Assembly (NCBI GenBank): GCA_021613535.1
Contig: CP075496.1
Location: forward strand, 1,736,001 to 1,800,000
From: Adineta vaga
Taxonomy: Eukaryota; Animalia; Rotifera
Direction: 5' to 3'
Length of the DNA: 64,000 nt
Shown here: in pieces, positions 15,492 to 58,581 of the stretch
Numbering within the stretch: position 1 is the stretch's first letter
Layout: every line of letters starts with the position of its first letter
Notes under the pieces: model-generated
The model's input: only the letters and a program-made list of their open reading frames with translations
Told to the model about the DNA's origin: nothing
Database searches by the model: none
Position numbers and translations under genes: made by a program

Positions 15492-18400
15492 ATGACCGAG
15501 TAAGATTTCTCTTATCTAATAAATTTTCAAATTCTTCTTCTAGACGTTCAATTCATTGTACATTTCATCATGTATCTCCTGATCTTGTTCAAATTCTCTC
15601 GTCATCTTTATCCATTCGTTCGTTATCAAAGAGTAAAGATAATCAATATACATATACATGTTCATTATCAATTGCACGTCATATTCGTTCAATTCTGGCT
15701 GATTCCCTTGCCGAATATCCGCAAATATGGTTTTCAATTGATCATCTCAGTCATTCATCATCGAAACTTTTCAAAGACTCTCAACCTCTCGATCATCTTT
15801 ATTTTGGTTCTTTACTTTCAACAGAAAAATTTCTCATTCATTCAACGCCTCTCAATGATAGAAAATCATGGACAATTCGTATTGATCCAAAACAAAATCT
15901 TCTACTTCAATCTTCCGACGAACAATTATCAATTCCATTGAAATTTCTTCATAAAGAGATTCTCGTTATTGATAGTGAAGACTTTTCCGAAATCATTTTC
16001 AGTTACAATTCAATTTCAATCGATCGTCCAGCAAAGTAAAAACCTCTTCTTCTTCTTCTTCTTCCTAATATTCGATCTGATTGATCGTTATAGATTGTAT
16101 GGAAATCATCCATTAGTTCAATCATTAAATCAATGCAGCGATTTCTTAATATGTTTCTCGCCAAAATCTCGTGTTGATACATTTCTTGATTATCTTCAAA
16201 TCAATCATCATTTTCGAATCTTTTATACAATTCTAACAGTACAATCGAGTATTTCTCAATGGTCCACGAATTGTTTCGAAGATTATCAAACAGATTATTC
16301 ACGTTACGGTCTATCGATATTACATTCGTTAGGTTATGTTTTCGATGATAAATATTTAACAAATAAAAATCTTCAAAATCAAATGAAAATCTTAGCAGAA
16401 GAAAATGAAAATCAATTCTATCAATTATCATTGAAAGTTTATTATGAATTGAAAAAATGTCATTGGTTGAATCTAAGTACACTTTTTCAACAAAATTCTA
16501 CGAAAATCTTAGGAAATAATGACAAAAATCTGTATGTATCTGTTATTCATTTAACACCGACTCGTTTATTAATCATGCCGAAAGAAAAGACGAAAGGTCA
16601 TCGTGTTATACGTCATTCACAATTTCAAGGTATTGATGATTTTTGTCTTGTTTATATCAAACCTGATCCTCCAAATCTTTATTTAAATGACAATCATCAA
16701 TTACTTGATTATTTTCAAGAAATCTTCGAAAGAGGAATTGATTTTAATGGATATAAATATCATTTGTTTGGTTCATCGAATTCTCAATTGAAAGAACATT
16801 CATTTTGGTTTATAAAATCCCTGTCATTAGATGAAATTCATCGAAAACGACAAATTCTTGGTCAATTCGATCAAATACGAAATTTAGGAACATATGTTGC
16901 TCGGTTAGGTTTATGGTTTAGTAAAACTGATTCGACGAATGTAAGTTTTTTCATGTATAGAATTCGTTAAGATCAATGAAATTTTGAATTTCTTAGATTA
17001 AATTGATTTATTGTTCGAATGAAAGGGAATTTTCAACTCGTGTTCAACAAGGAGAGATGTGTGTTGTGATGATTGAAGATATTGAAAGAAATAATTATTG
17101 TTTTACGGACGGATGTGGATTAATTTCGAAAGGTTTAGCAAAATTAATACAAGAAACACAAGAGAAATTAGATGTTCTTCCATCAGCTTATCAAATTCGT
17201 TTAGCGGGATGTAAAGGTTTGATTATTCTCGATCCACAATCTACATTTCAACAATTCTACATGAAAATTCGACCATCAATGAAAAAATTCGAATGTAATC
17301 ATTGGTTTTTAGATATTTGTGATTATAGTCGAGCAAGTAAACGAAGTTTTGATTTGGAAATAGATGATCTATTAGGGAATTTTAGCACCAAGTCGATTGA
17401 ATAATCAATTCATATGGTTATTATCCGATCTTGGAGTATCAGATAAAACATTACTTCAACTTCAACAACGATGGTTTAGTAAGAAACCGTCATCTTCAAA
17501 TTATTCTACGTTAGAATGAAAGACTTCAAAATGTGCTTTTTGACCTTGACATGATTTTCTTTTAGGGACATATTGAAGAATAAGATTCCATTACCTGTTA
17601 ATGAATGTCGTTATATCTATGGTTGTACATTAGAATCGCAACTTGAAGAAGGACAATGTTTTCTTCGTTATGAAGTATTAAATTCTCATGGAAAATCATT
17701 GACAAATCGAAAGTTTGAATGTGTTCGAGGAAGAATTATTGTTACGAAAAATCCATGGTAAATTCTTCTTATTGAAGAAAGAAATTTTCTTAGAAAATAT
17801 TTTAGTCCATATGCTGGAGATATGTTAGAATTATGGGCAGTAGATTTACCAGAGTTACATCATTTAAATGATGTGATTGTGTTTTCTGTTCGTGGTGAAC
17901 GTAAGATTTATTTATTCCTTCATTTTGTTTATAATAAGGACATTTTCAGGACCAGATTTTAATAAAATCGCTGGATCGGATCTTGATGGTGATGGATATT
18001 TCGTAAGGATTTCTATTTTCATAGAATTTCGTTTTCTTTTCATTGACTTTCGTAGGTTTATTGGGGAGAAGAATTACGTCTTAAACGTCAAGTAAAACCT
18101 TTGGATTATACACCGGATGAAAAACAATATCAATCAACAGCAATTTCACCGAAAGATATTATTCGATATTGTTTATCAACATTAAATGCAACGAATTCAG
18201 GTGAAATCTATAATGTACATGCAGTTATTGTTGATAAAAATTATGAAAATCATTCTCAACGAACTTGTCAACCATTAGCAATTGAATTAGCTCGAATGTT
18301 TTCATCTTCTGGTTTGTTTGTTTTTCTTCGATAAGTTGAACTAGAAGAATTGTTTGTGTTTAGTCGATTCGGGTAAAACAGGTTATGTGGTGGATAAAAA

Positions 18401-26901: not shown

Positions 26902-28109
26902 TCATTTATCATGAATTGTCATATAGTAAAGACATCCTTTTAAACCTAAATCATCATCATCAATTAACGTAAGTGGAACACGTGCAACAATTTCACTCAT
27001 TTTCGGTCCTTGATCTAAATAAGATTTAAGTAAAAGATTTTCAGGATTGTTTTGCCAACGCCATGCTAATTTAGGTAGAATACCACCAGTGATATATAAA
27101 CCACGATAAGGTAGAAATGTTTGAGCTGCTGTACCTAATGTTCGACCATAGATATCCAGAAATGTATCAACAACTCGAAGACATAAGGAATCTTGATAAT
27201 CACAAGCATGTTGAGCTATAATTGCTGGTGCATCATCTTGTGAAACTTTTTCAAGATCTTCATTCAATTTCGATGTTAATGATTGATTTAAATATTCGGA
27301 ATAAAATTGTAACATTGTGACAAAAGCTGGACCAGAAACAAGTTGTTCAATTTCGATAAATGATTGATGACGACGTAAATATTTTAATAAACACCATTCT
27401 TCTTCTGATCGTGGACTAAATGTATCTGTCATTCCTGCTTCAGATGGATGAACTTGATACCGACCTGAACCATCTGGCGAAAGATAACATGCACCAAGAC
27501 CTGTACCAGCACCGAGACAAGCAACTGGTGATTTAGTTTCAGAAGTTTCTTCAGTAGAACTTGTATGAAGAACAATAATTTTAGTCGATTGACATAAGGC
27601 ATTTGCTCGAGGATCTACTTGTGCAGCAAGACAATAACCAATTGCTTCAAAATCATTCAAGAAAATGAGCGAATTTGGCTTAAGTTTTAAATAATTTTCA
27701 ATATCATCTGCATGTTGTGTTGGCCATCCTGAACCATCAGGTTCCATACGAACATTATTTGCATCATTACTTCGACGATTATTCCAAATCGGACCACAAA
27801 CAGCTAAAACTATACGAATACTAAAGAGATGATAGAAAAAAAAACATCATTTACAATACTATTCAATTACTTTTTATTTAAAATAGCATTTCGTATATCT
27901 TCTTGTTGATGTTCTTCATTTGAAATCTCATTGAGAAATCGTTGTAAAATTTCACCAAGACCTGTAAAAGTATTTGTTCGATACGTTTGTCGACTTATAT
28001 GTAAAATTGATGGTGTTAATAATGTTTGATTATAATTATACCAAAGAAATTGTACACGTGCATTTGTACCACCAATATCACCAACAATAACTGCACATGA
28101 TTTCGACAT
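26902..28109 (-). CDS. glk: Bacterial-type (Glk, non-ROK) glucokinase with one spliceosomal intron
   Basis: Motifs VGDIGGTNAR, LAVCGP, LNDFEAIGY, GAGTGLG, SEAG, EQLVSG, GLYITGGI and GLKG. A 50-nt GT-AG intron at 27821-27870 joins the two ORFs in frame. Confidence 0.88.
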
Positions 28110-32621: not shown

Positions 32622-33602
32622 TTATGCGACACGATGAAATTTAAAACGATGATTTACTGTTTTATCATTTTCACCAAGTGAAACAACAATTCTCTTTCCT
32701 AAAACTTGTAATCGTTTTGCCCTTGAATAACACGGTCGTATATAGAATAGATTATAATTATCAATTTTTTCCAAAGTAAATCGTTTACATAACTGATTTG
32801 ATTGTTTTCGACGTGTCGAAAGAATTGATGATGGTATCCAATGTTCTTCGCTTTCATAACATTTCAAAACTGTCCATGGACATCGTGTATGTTGAGTGAA
32901 AAATTCATATTCAAGAAAAGATTGTTTGATTAAGAAAATACTTTCACGTAGAAGTTTATTTGACATGACACATAAATCATCTTTACTATCGATTAACCAA
33001 CCTTCAGTTGAAAGACATTCGATCATATAGAAACCATCTGGAAGATAACTACTTTGAGAATATTGTTTTAAAAGTGAAAGATCATTCATCGAAGACAAAT
33101 TTAATACAAGTGATGATGATGGAATTGAAAATTTTTGAAATTGTTCTTCTCCAGATTTGTTTAATAAACGATGACTAATGTGTTCACCGATGATTTGATT
33201 ATTAAATATTAATATTAATGAAATCAATTGATAATGAAGAAATTCAGCGATATACAAACGAATATCATCTTCTTTCGAATAACAATGGATATTTAATACT
33301 TTTAAATAAGGACAATAAGTTTTTATTGATTGAATGTATGTTGATAATCGGTAAGGATGACCAATTGATAGATGAGAAAGATTAAAACCAATTATTGGTA
33401 TAATTTTGTATAAACAATATTGAAATATTGTATTGTCATTCGTTTTTATTAACTGAAATTTTCGTCGAAGGAAATATTCGACAATAAAAGAGAAATCATT
33501 CGTCAATTCAAAGAATGAATAAATTACATGTTCTTTATGAAGATATTGAAAAATTGAATAAATTATTTCAGTTGGTAAATCAATCAACGATTGTTTTGTC
33601 AT
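32622..33602 (-). CDS. Intronless F-box protein with a possible beta-trefoil-like C-terminal domain
   Basis: N-terminal LIDLPTEIIYSIFQYL F-box-like motif in a 326-aa open frame. The C-terminal domain call is pattern-based only. Confidence 0.65.
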   Translation of the reverse strand: MTKQSLIDLPTEIIYSIFQYLHKEHVIYSFFELTNDFSFIVEYFLRRKFQLIKTNDNTIFQYCLYKIIPIIGFNLSHLSIGHPYRLSTYIQSIKTYCPYLKVLNIHCYSKEDDIRLYIAEFLHYQLISLILIFNNQIIGEHISHRLLNKSGEEQFQKFSIPSSSLVLNLSSMNDLSLLKQYSQSSYLPDGFYMIECLSTEGWLIDSKDDLCVMSNKLLRESIFLIKQSFLEYEFFTQHTRCPWTVLKCYESEEHWIPSSILSTRRKQSNQLCKRFTLEKIDNYNLFYIRPCYSRAKRLQVLGKRIVVSLGENDKTVNHRFKFHRVA

Positions 33603-51937: not shown

Positions 51938-53884
51938 CGATGTACGGAACTTTTAAAAAGACAAAAAAATGAGCTGACAAACGAATTAGTATAATATTTT
52001 CTTTTATTTATAACAGTATTAATATTCTTGATTGTGCGTGTTATTGTCATCTATAATGAACTTTGATGTTGCAGGAATCTCATTAGTTTTTTGTTAAACT
52101 TAATTGGTATTGCGTAGTCATACAGTTACTTTTGAAAGTTTTATTTCTTCTGTGAAAAAAGATTCTCTGTCTTTTATTGATTGATTCATCATCCAGGTAT
52201 CATTGTTAATGTAAATGTTGTGTTGGACCTAATCGCATTCGACAACATTAAGGAATGTTAACTGTAAATGATTGCGATCAATGTTCGTTAGTATGTGAAT
52301 CAAGTTGTCGAATAGTCCATCCAAAGGAGACATGGCATAATCGAATTAGGAAACAGTTCATGATGTAGTTCATATAGATTATTCTACATTTATCGATTCT
52401 TCCATTACGACATTTTTTTTAAATCGAAAGAAATCAATAACGACGGATTGTCCGCTGAAAATTTTCTACAATAGAACAAAATAAACTTTTCCATTCACAA
52501 TATATATTTTTTCGTAAAAACTTCATTCAATTTCTGTTGAAATGATCTGGAGACAGCTCTTGCTGGAAGATGACATCAATCACACTTCTTCTTCGATTTG
52601 TCATGCTTTAAACGAATTTATAACTCATTTATTTGGTAGATCTTAGATCAATATCTGATTGAAGCCAATCTAACATTGATCCTGTACATACAGCTAAAGT
52701 TGTGCTTGCTAATTAATCATCATTTGACGGTGATAATCAAGATGGTAAAGTACTCTCTCGATATGCCGATAGAATATATTGATTACATACAAGGGGTAAA
52801 AAGCAGACTATTTCGGATTCTAGGATACATTTTTCACCTTTGTCAAGATGGAATAAGATCCGATAGAAAAGTAATTAGCATCGATTTCTTAAATAAACAC
52901 AATCGTGATATTAGATAAGGAAACTACTATAGGTATATATTTAATAACGACTATATAACAACTTCAGGTGGAGCGACTTCTTCACGGAAAATCAATGAAG
53001 TATAACTCCGGTACATCATGTAAACATGAAACACATTTTGTGTTTACAAATACATCTCATCGCATTTCAATGAAGTTCAAATATATCAAGAATCGCAGAC
53101 CGGATGCGATTATATCCTAAACTGCATCTTTCCGCATTTGTTAGTTGCGACTGCAATACATAATTTTTCTCTAAAAGATTTTCTGTCCATGCTAGAAGAC
53201 GTATACATTCAAAACATCATTCTATCATCAGACATTAAACGTAAAATCCAAGAACCAACTAGTAAAACTTGTGGACTAGACCATACACTTCATTTTCACA
53301 TTAATTCGAACCCTTCATTTTCCAAATAGCGTAGCAATCTACGACACCGTGAACCTTGAAACAAAAGCCCACTTATGAGAGCAATGCAAAAAAAAGTTCC
53401 GACGTATATTTCGATGCTTATTGCACCAGCATAAGCTGTAAAAGAAATAATCTTTCATAAGTTTCCCAGAGATCACCAATGAGAGTGAATGGAACGTAAC
53501 TATGAAAAGGTTTATATCGTCTGCTGCTTCTGTTCTCCTTCCCTTTATCCGCTAAACCATTCGAACTTTCCTGAAAAACATTATTTACATCAGTACAAAG
53601 TTTCAGTAGAGAAGCTGTAAAACCCATCAACCTTTCAACAAAATTGCGAAACTAAAGCGGATTCCATAGAAAACATGTCTCGTTGTCTGACCCGCTCTAA
53701 ACTCATTACTTTGATGAAAATTTCCCTTTCACAGTGCCAAATCGTTAGTTCCGAACACAACATGCTACCATCTGAAAAATCACGCTTCCTACATCAGAGT
53801 ATATCAGATATTCCTATCAACCAATTTATCGAAAAGAATTCCAAACAAAAAAAGGACCACAAAGTAATATCCGACGATTCAGGA

Positions 53885-56800
53885 CTAACATAACACCCTA
53901 TTTACTAAACAATTCCGAAGCTGTTCTCGTCTTTCGTCGGCGATTTGATTATTCCAGAGAATGAGTTGGGTGAGTGTCTTTAAACGAGAGGGAAGATGAA
54001 TATATCAGTTCTACAAATAGCGATTTAATATTACCGTATTCATTCGCAATGCATCACCGATATGTTGTGCTCCTTGGTCGCCCATTTGATTTTCCCCGAG
54101 ATCTAGTGCGGTGAGTGTCTTTAAACGAGAGGGAAGATCAATATATCAGTTCTACAAATAGCGATTTAATATTACCGTATTCGTTCGCAAGCCATCACCG
54201 ATATGTTGTGCTCCTTGGGCGCCGATTTGATTTTCCCCGAGATCTAGTGCGGTGAGTGACTATAAACGAGAGGGAAGATGAATATATCAATTCTACAAAT
54301 AGCGATTTAATATTACCGTATTCGTTCGCAAGCCATAACCGATATGTTGTGCTCCTTGACCGCCGATTTGATTCGAACAGAGATCTAGTGTGGTGAGTGT
54401 CTATAAACCAGAGGGAAGAAGAATGTACGAGTTCTCTAAAGTGCGAATGACTGTTACCGTATTCGTTCGCAACGCATCACCGATATGTTGTGCTCCTTGA
54501 TCGCCGATTCTATTGTATCCAAGACGTAGTGTGGTGAGTGCCTCCACATGAGAGAAAACATGAATATATCAGTTCTACAAATAGTGATTTAATGTTACCG
54601 TATTCGTTCGCAAGGCATAACCGATATGTTGTGCTCCTTGAGCGCCGATTTGATTTAGCATGAGATTTAGTGTGGTGAGTGTCTATAAACGAGAGGAAAG
54701 ATGAATGTACAAGTTCTCTGAAGTGCGATTGGCTGTTACCGTATTCGTTCGCAAGGCATAACCGATATGTTGTGCTCCTTGTGCGCCGATTTGATTTCGC
54801 GTAAGATCTAGTGTGGTGAGTGCCTGCAAATGAGAAAAATATGAGTATATCAGTTCTCTAAACACCAATTTAATATTACCGTATTCGTTCGCAAGCTATC
54901 ACCAATATGTTGTGCTCCTTGATCGCCGATTCTATTGTATCCAAGATCTAGTGTTGTGAGTTCCTGCACATGAGAGCAAATATGAATATATCAGTTCTAC
55001 AAATAGCGATTTAATGTTACCGTATTCGTTCGCAACGCATCACCGATATGTTGTCCTCCTTTATCGCCGATTTGATTTCGCGTCAGATTGAGTTTATTGA
55101 GTGTCTATAAACGAGAGGTAAGATGAATATATCAGTTCTCTAAATACCAATTTAATATTACCGTATTCGTTCGCAACGCATCACCGATATGTTGTGCTCC
55201 TTGATCGCCGATTTGATTTCGCGTCAGATTGAGTTCGGTGAGTGCCTGCAGATGAGAGAAAATATGGATGTATGAGTTCTCTAAAGAGCGATTTAATGTT
55301 ACCGTATTCGTTCGCAACACATCACCGATATGTTGTGCTCCTTGATCGCCGATTTGATTTCCCCTGAGATCTAGTGTGGTGACTGCCTGCAGATGAGAGA
55401 AAATATGAATATATCAGTTCTCTAAATACCAATTTAATATTACCGTATTCGTTCGCAACGCATCACGGATATGTTGTGCTCCTTGAGCGCCGATTTGATT
55501 TAGCATGAGATTTAGTGTGGTGAGTGTCTATAAACGAGAGGGAAGATGAATGTACAAGTTCTCTGAAGTGCGATTGGCTGTTACCGTATTCGTTCGCAAG
55601 GCATAACCGATATGTTGTGCTCCTTGAGCGCCGATTTGATTTCGCGTAAGATCTAGTTTGGTGAGTGCCTGCAAATGGGAAAAATATGAATATATCAGTT
55701 CTACAAATACCAATTTAATATTACCGTATTCGTTCGCAAGGCATCACCGATATGTTGTGCTCCTTGATCGCCGAATTGATTTTTTCCGAGATCTAGTGCG
55801 GTGAGTGTCTATAAACGTGAGGGAAGATGAATATATCAGTTCTCTAAATACCAATTTAATATTACCGTATTCGTTCGCAACGCATCACCGATATGTTGTG
55901 CTCCTTGATCGCCGATTCTATTGTATCCAAGATGTAATGTGGTGAGTGCCTGCAGATGAGAGAAAATATGGATGTATGAGTTCTCTAAAGAGCGATTTAA
56001 TGTTACCGTATTCGTTCGCAACGCATCACCGATATGTTGTGCTCCTTGATCGCCGATTTGATTTTCCCCGAGATCTAGTGCGGTGAGTGTCTATAAACGA
56101 GAGGGAAGATGAATATATCAGTTCTACAAATAGCGATTTAATATTACCGTATTCGTTCGCAAGCCATAACCGATATGTTGTGCTCCTTGATCGCCGATTT
56201 GATTTTCCCCGAGATCTAGTGCGGTGAGTGTCTATAAACGAGAGGGAATATGAATATATGAGTTCTACAAATAGCGATTTAATATTACCGTATTCGTTCG
56301 CAAGCCATAACCGATATGTTGTGCTCCTTGATCGCCGATTTGTTTCGAACAGAGATCTAGTTTGGTGAGTTCCTGTATAGAGAATGTACGTTTTGAAAAT
56401 ATATAAGGGAATCGACACTTCTAATCAACGTTTTGGAAGTTGTTACAGGAGCTTTCATAGTGTTTCTGTTATTCTTCTATTCCTTCGATCCGATATTTTT
56501 CTTTCTTGATGATGATATATATTTGATCACACATCATCACCTAGCTGTATTATGTCTAAACCCTTGATTCGTTGGACCTTATATATATATGTGTGTGTTC
56601 GTTTTCTTCTCTATAGTTGGTCTCATGTCGTGTGTATCTATATGATGATGATTCGATAACGATAGTTCACTTTTCTAATTATTTAGCCATCTAAATTTTG
56701 ATTCACGTTATTACTATGCATAACGCTTTGTTTGTTCCCTCATCGGTGTAAGAATATCTATAGATAAAAGTTATTCGAGGAATGTGTGAATTCATATCTG

Positions 56801-58310
56801 ATCCTCTCCGGCATATCAAAACTTTCGAGAAAATGGGTCTCTGTTTTCCTGAACCCGGTTTTTCGCACGGTCAGTTTTGTACAGGATGTTCAAGAGTGAT
56901 GGAGTCTAATTGCCCAAAGATTCAGGTGTAAGATACTTCTATACAGAGTGAAATGAATAATGAAACAAGTGTAACAGATGATGTTGTTTATGAGGAAATT
57001 TTTTCGTAAATGTTTCTTAGTTAATTTTCGTAGTTGATCATTTCAATAATATTTTTATTATTTAATCTTTTTAATCTTTTCAAATGAAAATACTGATTTA
57101 AAACTCTTAGTCAGCCAAATTTTATGATAATTCCAAGGTCAAATTATTCATAGGGTTTTTAGCCTGTGTGTATTTATCATCGTCAAATAAACCCTAACAG
57201 AAGTAAATGTGGAATTCCAACAAAATTCTGTTGAAGGTATGTGAAAGGGTTTGGAAATCGTTTGTTCGGGTGTATTATACAAAGACATGAATTATTATGG
57301 GGCTAATTATCACTGCTTAATGTGCGAAGTATTGAATGGGTAGGGTGACGACGGCAATTAGAAATGGTAGCTAATGTATGAAAATAGTTCTTATGTGTGG
57401 AATGTTTAAAGATGCATTTGACGTGGACCTCCTGACTTTTGAAACGGTCGTGGAGCTTTGTCGTTCATTCACAGTTGATTGAACCATAGTTGCTGTTAAA
57501 GGGAAGTAATGTTTACTAATGTTTTTTTTACAGGCGACGAAGATTTTTTTAGATTTTAAGTTTTCGTATTAGATACTCGAGTCAATGCTACTGTTTTATT
57601 GTTGATTTTTATGGTTGATTAATGAGGTAGAATACTCAGTCGTTCCTAAGTATTGTACAGTCCACTTTATCTTATCTGCTTGTTTTGAAAGAAAGTTGTC
57701 GCATTGTTTGAGAGATCCAATCAGGGGCGTGACACTCCCCTGTTTCGGGAAAATTTTTGTATTTTTGCTCGTCAAAACTTTTTAAAGCAAAAACAACTTT
57801 TTCGCTGCGCTCCCCCTGCCTTTGACAGTTTGTGACGCGCCTGGATTCAATAGGGACATCTGTTTGTGATGAGAAAAGTGCGTTTTAATTGGACAATTTT
57901 ATTCTTGCTTCGCTCACGATCTTATATTAGCTAAGAAGCATATTTTCTGGGCATCGAAGGAAAAGAAGAGAATGAAGAAGCGTTTGTTTTGTAATAACAT
58001 GAGTCAATGTTTTGGTTGACTCACTCGTGGCAATTGCTTCCAAATTGTGAAATTATTTGCTTTCTTCTTTGAGTAAAATCATTGAGTAGGATATTGCTAG
58101 ACTCGTGTGTGGTAGAGCAGACGAGAAAATAGTTTGAGCATTTAGAAAACTTACTAGATATCGATGATAAGTGTTAAGGATTTGATTGAAACGTCGACAA
58201 ACATTTTGCATTGAACAAAACAGTGTAAAATCGCTCTGATGATCCATAATTCGATAAACGAGTTCGATAGGCAATGTTAAAAATGTGTACATATTCTTTT
58301 TAGATTCCAT
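53885..58310 (-). CDS. F-box + RI-like/NLRC3-like LRR protein (~558 aa if all exons are used): F-box exon, 17 single-LRR exons and a terminal capping exon
   Basis: Exon 1 at 58155-58310 (FLTLPIELVYRIMD...VCRRFNQIL, ends at a phase-0 gtaag). 17 exons of 84 nt with consensus TLTxLxLxxNQIGDQGAQHIGDALRTNT. Last exon at 53885-53977 reads TLTQLILWNNQIADERREQLRNCLVNRVLC*. Confidence 0.85.
53970..56372 (-). repeat. Tandem array of 17 units of ~141 bp (84-nt LRR exon + 56-57-nt intron)
   Basis: Low coordinates of the exons: 54035, 54176, 54317, 54458, 54599, 54740, 54880, 55021, 55162, 55303, 55444, 55585, 55725, 55866, 56007, 56148, 56289. A recurrent core TTACCGTATTCGTTCGCAA marks each unit. Confidence 0.95.
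57722..57843. mobile_element. hAT-like MITE (~122 bp) inside intron 1 of the F-box/LRR gene
   Basis: Imperfect TIRs CAGGGGCGTGACA / TGTGACGCGCCTG (11/13 match). Flanked by an 8-bp near-perfect TSD, GATCCAAT (57714-57721) / GATTCAAT (57844-57851). Confidence 0.75.
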
Positions 58311-58581
58311 ACAAAAGATTGTTGAAAATACAAGGTTTTGAATATATTTTATTTATTACAAGAAGCAGTTTGTTATACTGAAATAGTTATTTTTTGTTAT
58401 TGAAAACGAATGAAGTGTGACGGTTTAAACAGTATAGCGAATAGTTAGTTTACTCAAGAAGATGGCGTTAATGTAAGGATGGCTCATAAGTCAGGTAACA
58501 AAGATTTTTTTGATTTCTTTCTTATATACCGTTGTTCACATCTGATATTTATAGCATATATATATATATATATATATACTA

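Follow-up and report, generated by a model that had tools for sequence, protein, structure and literature searches.

Does the array of near-identical leucine-rich repeat (LRR) exons on a chromosome of Adineta vaga, a bdelloid rotifer, encode a receptor that is varied by combining its exons, or one ordinary gene of a family that diversifies over evolutionary time? We address this question for a gene on the minus strand of a 64,000-nucleotide stretch of A. vaga DNA, here called the window (contig CP075496.1, positions 1,736,001 to 1,800,000, assembly GCA_021613535.1), where it runs from position 58310 to 53885. An initial annotation, made from the letters of the window, had described the gene as an F-box receptor built from 17 interchangeable one-LRR cassettes and had proposed a combinatorial recognition system. 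In the reading we prefer, the gene is a transcribed germline member of an F-box/LRR family whose arrays evolve in concert, whose binding loop is diversified, whose product is a substrate adaptor of the Skp1-cullin-F-box (SCF) ubiquitin ligase and whose presence at this site is a lineage-specific arrival; taken as a whole, we regard this reading as probable. At its core the initial annotation saw an F-box adaptor whose LRR face diversifies and which was assembled through duplication of exons. This core is reasonable, and the gene itself is one ordinary family member.

A window position c corresponds to CP075496.1 position 1,736,000 + c, and the gene sits about 1.79 Mb along the 15.2-Mb chromosome. 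The reverse complement of locus L002 (CP075496.1 1,776,933-1,797,937; GCA_021613535.1) is identical to window 40933-61937. Read from 58310 to 53885, the gene consists of an F-box exon, a long intron, 17 LRR exons and a cap exon. Minus-strand parsing showed that every LRR exon measures exactly 84 nt (28 aa), with AG directly before it and GTAA directly after it, and that the exons are separated by short GT..AG introns of 57 nt (15 introns) or 56 nt (two introns), and Tandem Repeats Finder reported a 141-nt period with 17.3 copies over 53937-56370. The repeat unit of 141 bp first proposed holds for most cassettes, and in two cases it is 140 nt. When the exons were joined by a local script they gave 1677 nt, comprising 558 codons and one terminal stop; all junctions are in phase 0, and a stop or frameshift was found in none of the 17 cassettes. 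The single phase-0 series of F-box exon and cassettes is thus as originally described, with the addition of a 1782-nt intron before cassette 1. Likewise, all 13 strand variants listed in the initial annotation were recovered, corresponding to 13 distinct signatures at repeat positions 4, 6, 8 and 9 among the 17 cassettes; the residue pairs at positions 8 and 9 are GE, TR, GY, CS, ML, GK and RG. The GenBank gene model covers the same span (L002 3628-8053, equivalent to window 58310-53885) and has a product of only 138 aa. This length is the sum of the F-box exon (52), two cassettes (56) and the cap (30), so that 15 of the 17 cassettes are missing from the public model. The identical architecture of four loci in three species argues against an assembly artefact. 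A pseudogene was considered and ruled out by the intact frame, the constrained framework and exact transcripts at both unique ends.

Transcription was assessed in sequencing runs examined over 53850-58350, which are stored as contigs, not reads, and give no isoform frequencies; contigs were taken at 95% likeness. Runs X13 and X17 behave as RNA, with zero depth over 56417-58077 in the long intron and coverage of the F-box exon and cassettes; DNA run X1 has a baseline depth of 76-125 across the long intron. Five GT..AG joints of 56-57 nt were present in X13/X17 (53977>54035, 55244>55302, 55385>55443, 55667>55724 and 56231>56289), and these joints were not seen in X1. Two contigs match the unique ends of the gene exactly, one over 58168-58338 and the other over 53850-53977 joined to exon 17, and a paralogue contig goes from the F-box exon directly into an LRR cassette. 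The locus holds an intact, transcribed, germline-encoded gene.

The most far-reaching suggestion of the initial annotation was that regulated skipping of the symmetric phase-0 cassettes yields many in-frame isoforms from each gene. That all junctions are in phase 0 is compatible with this idea but is not evidence for it, because symmetric phase arises automatically from tandem duplication of one exon-plus-intron unit. Two long joints of GT..AG type, 54682>55725 and 54962>56006, occur in the RNA-like runs only, and these would be expected if cassettes were skipped. They are nevertheless uninformative, because they rest on 21-46 framework letters common to several cassettes, one contig carries a mismatch, and dozens of paralogues are expressed, so that a normal neighbour joint elsewhere in the family would suffice to produce them; the five other joints are ordinary neighbour-to-neighbour joints. 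The 138-aa GenBank product has the composition of a skipped isoform, and the annotation of a Rotaria socialis locus (L004) passes over an intact in-frame cassette, but gene models across repeats are unreliable. In the latter case (L004 4876-5074), the P0187 model makes a 196-nt stretch one intron even though it encloses an 84-nt cassette that is intact and in frame and has AG and GT at its borders, reflecting either real cassette skipping or an annotation gap. We consider regulated skipping in this gene quite unlikely. The wider form of the proposal, in which combinatorial cassette use, possibly with frequent germline or clonal gain and loss of cassettes, would provide many F-box receptors per animal or clone from dozens of loci, appears to us still less probable; were it true, an asexual animal would possess an intracellular recognition repertoire, comparable to Dscam or ROCO, with a direct link to ubiquitination.

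The repeats had been described as ribonuclease inhibitor-like and the N-terminal exon as an F-box; the first assignment was upheld, and the second is probable. Domain and homology searches took individual exons or relatives from the databases as queries. Single cassettes match the Pfam family LRR_6, one of them (exon 4) above the cut-off, and the repeats follow the ribonuclease inhibitor-like 28-29-residue form LxxLxLxxNxIGxxGAxxLxxALxxN, with a strand-helix solenoid in the model of a relative. This model was made with AlphaFold2 for residues 1-218 of the A. ricciae protein P0167, a family member and not the gene itself, from an 11-sequence alignment. It has a mean predicted local distance difference test (pLDDT) score of 83.9 and shows one strand and one helix per 28 residues after three short N-terminal helices. 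Its best Foldseek matches are NOD2, NLRP3 and ribonuclease inhibitor, with E values of 1e-13 to 1e-9, together with axonemal LRR proteins, and these matches are driven by the LRR part. In the cassette numbering the strand comprises positions 4-6 and the strand-to-helix loop positions 8-11; this region carries most contacts in ribonuclease inhibitor complexes. For the N-terminal exon, the aligned family F-box exons matched PF12937 in 19 of 21 cases and PF00646 in 11 of 21 (E<=0.01), and full-length relatives have precomputed F-box matches and are named F-box domain-containing.

To place the variation within the array, we compared the diversity of its parts. The pairwise diversity of the introns is 0.19. 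In the framework codons (12, 13, 15-21 and 24-28) it is about 0.02 at all three codon positions (0.017 at third positions) and 0.000 at eight four-fold sites, which bears out the near-invariance of the framework at the DNA level that had been noted at the outset. At positions 1-2 of codons 8-9 diversity rises to 0.66, or 3.4 times the intron value, and in the paralogue L001 the excess at these codons is 6.4 times its own intron diversity, so the focus of variation on strand and loop positions was also correctly recognized. The residue pairs of L001 at positions 8 and 9 (EN, RY, GG, KD, EK and GY) differ as a set from those of the window gene. Across the family, represented by 24 bdelloid F-box/LRR proteins with 109 cassettes, entropy is highest at positions 8, 9 and 11.

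Two processes appear to act on these parts. The window gene and L001 show a divergence of 0.36 in their introns and of 0.23 at third positions of the framework, and codons 20, 26 and 27 carry fixed, locus-specific synonymous differences that are uniform inside each array. Because the same synonymous sites are fixed for different letters in the two paralogues, the invariance of the framework DNA within an array is attributable mainly to concerted evolution. Nucleotide-level purifying selection, which was considered as the main cause of the synonymous invariance, was dropped for the same reason. Together, the fixed paralogue differences point to concerted evolution of each array, alongside selection that favours diversity in the presumed binding loop. 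The array also retains traces of its growth, since two-cassette blocks have been duplicated: exons 12-13 are a near-duplicate of exons 6-7, and exons 15-16 resemble exons 1-2. These blocks and the uniform unit agree with the earlier proposal of growth by exon-plus-intron duplication. The variable segment is tightly linked with the 3' half of the upstream intron, whereas its association with the 5' half of the downstream intron, on the far side of the invariant framework, is shuffled, a pattern suggesting that exchanges take place inside the framework.

Such shuffling might also be produced by rearrangement of cassettes at the DNA level in somatic cells, as in the variable lymphocyte receptors (VLRs) of lampreys, with the framework serving as a tract for copy-choice or unequal recombination. 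The variable segments are indeed flanked by an invariant framework of about 50 nt, their pairing with types of downstream intron is shuffled, and paralogues differ in cassette number. Ordinary germline unequal crossing-over and gene conversion give the same shuffling, however, and the gene is already complete in the germline, its spliced frame being uninterrupted and its splice sites used in RNA, as opposed to an incomplete gene completed by cassette insertion. Run X1 shows no locus-specific deletion joints; the joints that it does contain carry extra letters and fit paralogues, and no rearrangement machinery was identified. Reordering of cassettes within an animal is unsupported, and we regard somatic rearrangement as very improbable.

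By its sequence relationships the gene is one germline member of a bdelloid-wide multigene family and not a unique system. A search with the F-box exon returned 492 cluster representatives at E<=1e-3, a number that falls to 35 at E<=1e-10; the closest matches are UJR34376.1 and ADD91459.1 of A. vaga, the latter named merely "leucine rich repeat containing protein", followed by proteins of A. ricciae. With the relative P0052 as query, F-box/LRR proteins of A. steineri and of Rotaria species were found. The nearest relatives are bdelloid-specific paralogues and not FBXL orthologues. The paralogue L001, found at 14.58 Mb of the same chromosome, comprises 19 cassettes and a 669-nt intron 1; the loci L003 of A. 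ricciae and L004 of Rotaria socialis have 6 and 8 cassettes, respectively, compared with 17 in the window gene. An exact-match exon mapper, used to locate the 28-aa exons of the relatives, showed that the combination of an 84-nt exon and a 57-nt intron with a longer first intron also occurs in L003 and L004. The rule of one phase-0, fixed-length exon per LRR holds in L001, L003 and L004. Since this architecture is kept in A. ricciae and Rotaria socialis, it is older than the divergence of these bdelloid genera. Depth summed over the F-box exon in DNA run X1 amounts to about 15-20 times the single-copy intron baseline, a rough sign of many close copies. Expanded LRR families have been reported in A. 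vaga, with a possible Penelope pLTR-mediated copy of one LRR family member (PMC3846280); we found no description of the bdelloid F-box/LRR architecture in the literature, that paper included.

Several further observations concern these relatives. The annotation of UJR34376.1 extends only as far as the F-box exon, and the family appears to be systematically under-annotated in A. vaga. In some bdelloid proteins (P0152, P0156, P0188, P0189, P0198, P0204 and others) the LRR array is predicted to be joined to other domains, the predicted partners being RING plus B-box, U-box plus kinase, B-box alone and ADP-ribosyltransferase. This suggests a wider LRR-plus-effector repertoire in bdelloids, and some of the fusions may be gene-model errors. 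The best non-rotifer matches of the LRR arrays (P0154, P0172, P0173, P0203, P0273 and P0276), at about 45-55% identity, come from Mortierella-type fungi, Capsaspora, Legionellaceae and Rickettsiales; these likenesses may stem from convergence between consensus-like repeats or from gene transfer.

The genomic setting bears on how the copy came to this site. Its neighbours are a PRPF6-like gene, a dynein light chain gene, a G protein-coupled receptor (GPCR) gene, an NHL-repeat gene and CEP19. Both flanks of the syntenic block are conserved in A. ricciae, where the interval from CEP19 to the GPCR gene is 3.7 kb and holds an ankyrin gene; no F-box/LRR gene was found in it. The corresponding A. vaga interval measures 11 kb and contains the NHL gene, an open reading frame (ORF) of unknown nature and the F-box/LRR gene, and the ohnologous block of A. 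vaga is also without an F-box/LRR gene. The absence of the copy from the A. ricciae interval and from the ohnologous block indicates that it arrived in the A. vaga lineage. In the comparison with one paralogue, L001, homology is confined to 58475-57932, the array and 53516-52865, which corresponds to a unit of about 5.6 kb without an accompanying gene; within intron 1, only the first ~220 nt and the last ~50 nt are homologous to the 669-nt intron of L001.

It could be argued that the gene is cargo of a transposon of about 10 kb, Helitron-like or mobilised by Penelope, that spreads selfishly, and that its variability reflects relaxed constraint in a decaying copy. The A. vaga LRR family member that may have been copied by means of a Penelope pLTR (PMC3846280), the lack of the copy in the syntenic A. 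ricciae interval and the roughly 1 kb of downstream non-coding DNA that moves with the gene are in keeping with this view. On the other hand, the homology to L001 extends over only ~5.6 kb and takes in no further gene, the surroundings contain no ORF for a transposase, Rep or helicase, and both intron 1 and the first 35 nt past the stop codon (53850-53884, the only 3' flank examined) are at single-copy depth. A repeat search of the long intron revealed no terminal repeats marking an insertion. Moreover, all 17 cassettes are intact, and a framework nonsynonymous diversity of about 0.02 denotes strong constraint, not decay. We judge selfish spread as transposon cargo to be unlikely, while allowing it some probability.

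Taken together, these data lead us to propose the following account of the gene as an evolving family member. A single F-box exon would be spliced directly onto an array of ribonuclease inhibitor-like 28-residue LRRs, and the array has grown by tandem duplication of one- and two-cassette blocks. Concerted evolution, through unequal crossing-over or gene conversion, would keep each locus uniform, with the invariant framework of ~50 nt probably acting as the homology tract for exchange, and selection would maintain differences between repeats and between paralogues at positions 8, 9 and 11 and, less strongly, at 4 and 6. These positions are predicted to lie on the beta-strand and the strand-to-helix loop, on the concave side of the solenoid. 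The protein is a putative substrate adaptor of an SCF ubiquitin ligase in which the F-box would bind Skp1 and the LRR solenoid the target. The family may thus form a fast-evolving recognition repertoire, diversified over evolutionary time and not within an animal, and the present copy would be a lineage-specific arrival of a ~5.6-kb unit amid conserved housekeeping genes. The defence role suggested in the initial annotation is unsupported for this gene.

A number of results weigh against this account. The F-box exon by itself falls narrowly under both Pfam cut-offs, scoring 21.1 bits for F-box-like (PF12937; cut-off 24.3) and 20.1 bits for F-box (PF00646; cut-off 20.5). A profile of the family F-box exons gave no match at E<=1 against PDB sequences, and in the P0167 model the F-box helices (9-16, 22-25 and 28-41) have pLDDT values of only 57-72. 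With regard to expression, RNA contigs at 95% likeness may derive from paralogues, and only the two unique ends match the locus exactly. For this gene, the X13/X17 contigs did not show the joint 58155>56372 between the F-box exon and cassette 1, and given this and an intron 1 that is unusually long for the genome, the copy could splice differently or less efficiently than its paralogues. Finally, when intron sites were drawn at random 100,000 times, the diversity of codons 8-9 was never attained, but the resulting resampling P-value is only indicative because cassettes are non-independent samples, and the diversity at these codons could in part represent old cassette types that escaped homogenisation, not fast substitution.

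The individual features of the gene, all on the minus strand, were located as follows. The F-box exon (58155..58310; 156 nt, 52 codons) begins with the ATG at 58310 and ends after a complete codon at a GTAAGT donor, in phase 0, as established from translation, Pfam and the coverage in X13/X17. It is preceded by 5' flank and 5'-untranslated region (UTR; 58311..58475) common to L001, with 78% identity in a blastn alignment of L001 13264-13800 with window 58475-57932; an exact RNA-like contig extends up to 58338. Intron 1 (56373..58154), which reads GTAAGT...ACAG, includes the interval of zero depth in X13/X17. Exon parsing placed the LRR exons, given here with the residues at positions 8 and 9, at 56289..56372 (exon 1, CS) and 56148..56231 (exon 2, GE), which are connected by the joint 56231>56289 in X13, and then at 56007..56090 (exon 3, GE), 55866..55949 (exon 4, GY; Pfam LRR_6 24.3 bits, cut-off 23.4), 55725..55808 (exon 5, GK; joint 55667>55724 in X17) and 55585..55668 (exon 6, TR; Pfam LRR_6 22.1 bits). 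Exon 7 (55444..55527, ML) is supported by the joint 55385>55443 in both X13 and X17, exon 8 (55303..55386, RG) by both its flanking joints in RNA-like runs and exon 9 (55162..55245, TR) by the joint 55244>55302 in X17. Exon 10 (55021..55104, TR) is the sole cassette with two framework changes (K15, G17). There follow exon 11 (54880..54963, GY), exon 12 (54740..54823, TR), exon 13 (54599..54682, ML), exon 14 (54458..54541, GY), which has the acceptor GGAG, exon 15 (54317..54400, CS), exon 16 (54176..54259, GE) and exon 17 (54035..54118, GE), the last with the joint 53977>54035 in X13. The C-terminal cap exon (53885..53977) contains 30 codons (53977-53888) and the TAG stop (53887-53885), and the 3'-UTR runs on below 53885; an exact RNA-like contig over 53850-53977 joins it to exon 17, and the homologous cap exon of L001 starts at 16933. 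Downstream, a non-coding stretch at 52865..53516 travels with the gene, as the 3'-UTR or the flank of the duplicated unit; it aligns with L001 17387-18128 by blastn at 67-80% identity and has no convincing ORF. Lying about 0.4-1 kb past the stop codon, it could be a long 3'-UTR, a regulatory element or the end of a mobile unit.

Other observations were made in and around the gene. In exact look-ups, neither the 85-aa read-through ORF of the F-box exon nor the ORF of the neighbouring GPCR gene had a counterpart on record. Within intron 1, window 56600-56816 is identical to a 217-nt contig in run X18, which is labelled as another organism and guessed to be RNA, and in DNA run X1 there are contigs that depart from the window sequence at 56581 and 57172; these findings could be due to sample mixing, to a difference between haplotypes or to a small insertion. 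Elsewhere in the window, a 326-aa ORF at 32622-33602 (minus strand) opens with the F-box-like motif LPTEIIYSIF but matches nothing in Pfam; possibly it represents another F-box family, unrelated to the first. An ORF at 26902-27747 (minus strand) matches the bacterial-type glucokinase family PF02685 (E 2.6e-39) and is a candidate for horizontal acquisition; horizontally acquired genes are common in bdelloids. A further ORF at 15969-16970 (plus strand) has a eukaryotic RNA-dependent RNA polymerase domain (PF05183, E 5.5e-19).

Little is known about how bdelloid rotifers, an anciently asexual group, defend themselves against pathogens and foreign DNA. In this setting, they appear to hold a large family of F-box adaptors in which the binding loop of the LRR is kept diverse and the rest of the repeat is homogenised. 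Together with the predicted joinings of LRR arrays to RING/B-box, U-box-kinase and ADP-ribosyltransferase domains, the F-box proteins form a candidate repertoire for recognizing variable targets and marking them for modification or degradation. The family would also offer a clear case, found in nature, of concerted evolution and diversifying selection at work within a few dozen bases of each other in one 141-nt unit. Since the public product of this 558-codon gene is 138 aa long, the family is liable to be under-counted in proteome-based studies.

Among known systems, the VLRs of lampreys resemble the gene in having LRR modules with variable concave-face residues between conserved framework, but they are assembled somatically from non-coding germline cassettes, whereas the rotifer germline gene is complete and shows no sign of somatic assembly. 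Ribonuclease inhibitor and the NLR proteins (NOD2, NLRP) share the repeat class and the fold, with a Foldseek E value of about 1e-12 for a family member, but these proteins have no F-box. Their exons are modular and in register with the repeats, usually with two repeats per exon (~171 nt), and we know of no report of comparable uniformity within an array in these genes. The canonical FBXL proteins (Skp2, FBXL2) have the same order of an F-box followed by a substrate-binding LRR solenoid (PMC7729025). Their repeats are cysteine-containing and about 26 residues long, and they are conserved, single-copy orthologues, whereas the rotifer repeats are 28-residue LRR_6 repeats of a multicopy, lineage-restricted family; the gene has neither CC-type ~26-residue LRRs nor FBXL orthology. 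Caenorhabditis and plants have positively selected families of SCF substrate adaptors of the F-box type that have expanded within particular lineages; their substrate-binding part evolves fast, and they have been proposed to target foreign or fast-changing proteins (e.g. PMC8120010, PMC3719486). The nematode families use FTH/FBA2 and the plant ones kelch, FBA or plant-type LRR, and none is described with an array of identical one-repeat exons; by analogy, they are the closest functional counterparts. In the LRR-ROCO genes of the brown alga Ectocarpus, one LRR is encoded per fixed-length, phase-0 exon of 72 nt (24 aa) and is joined to a ROC-COR GTPase, and these genes undergo exon duplication and shuffling with diversifying selection on concave-face residues, as proposed immune-type receptors (PMC3341825; PMC11378527). 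The rotifer gene differs in belonging to an animal, in its 84-nt ribonuclease inhibitor-like LRR exons, its F-box, the intron length fixed at 57 nt and the strong homogenisation of its array. It shares with them the single-LRR, fixed-length, phase-0 exons, a cassette number that varies between paralogues and the excess of change at ligand-facing positions, and on these likenesses the one-LRR-per-exon ROCO family is the closest described analogue.

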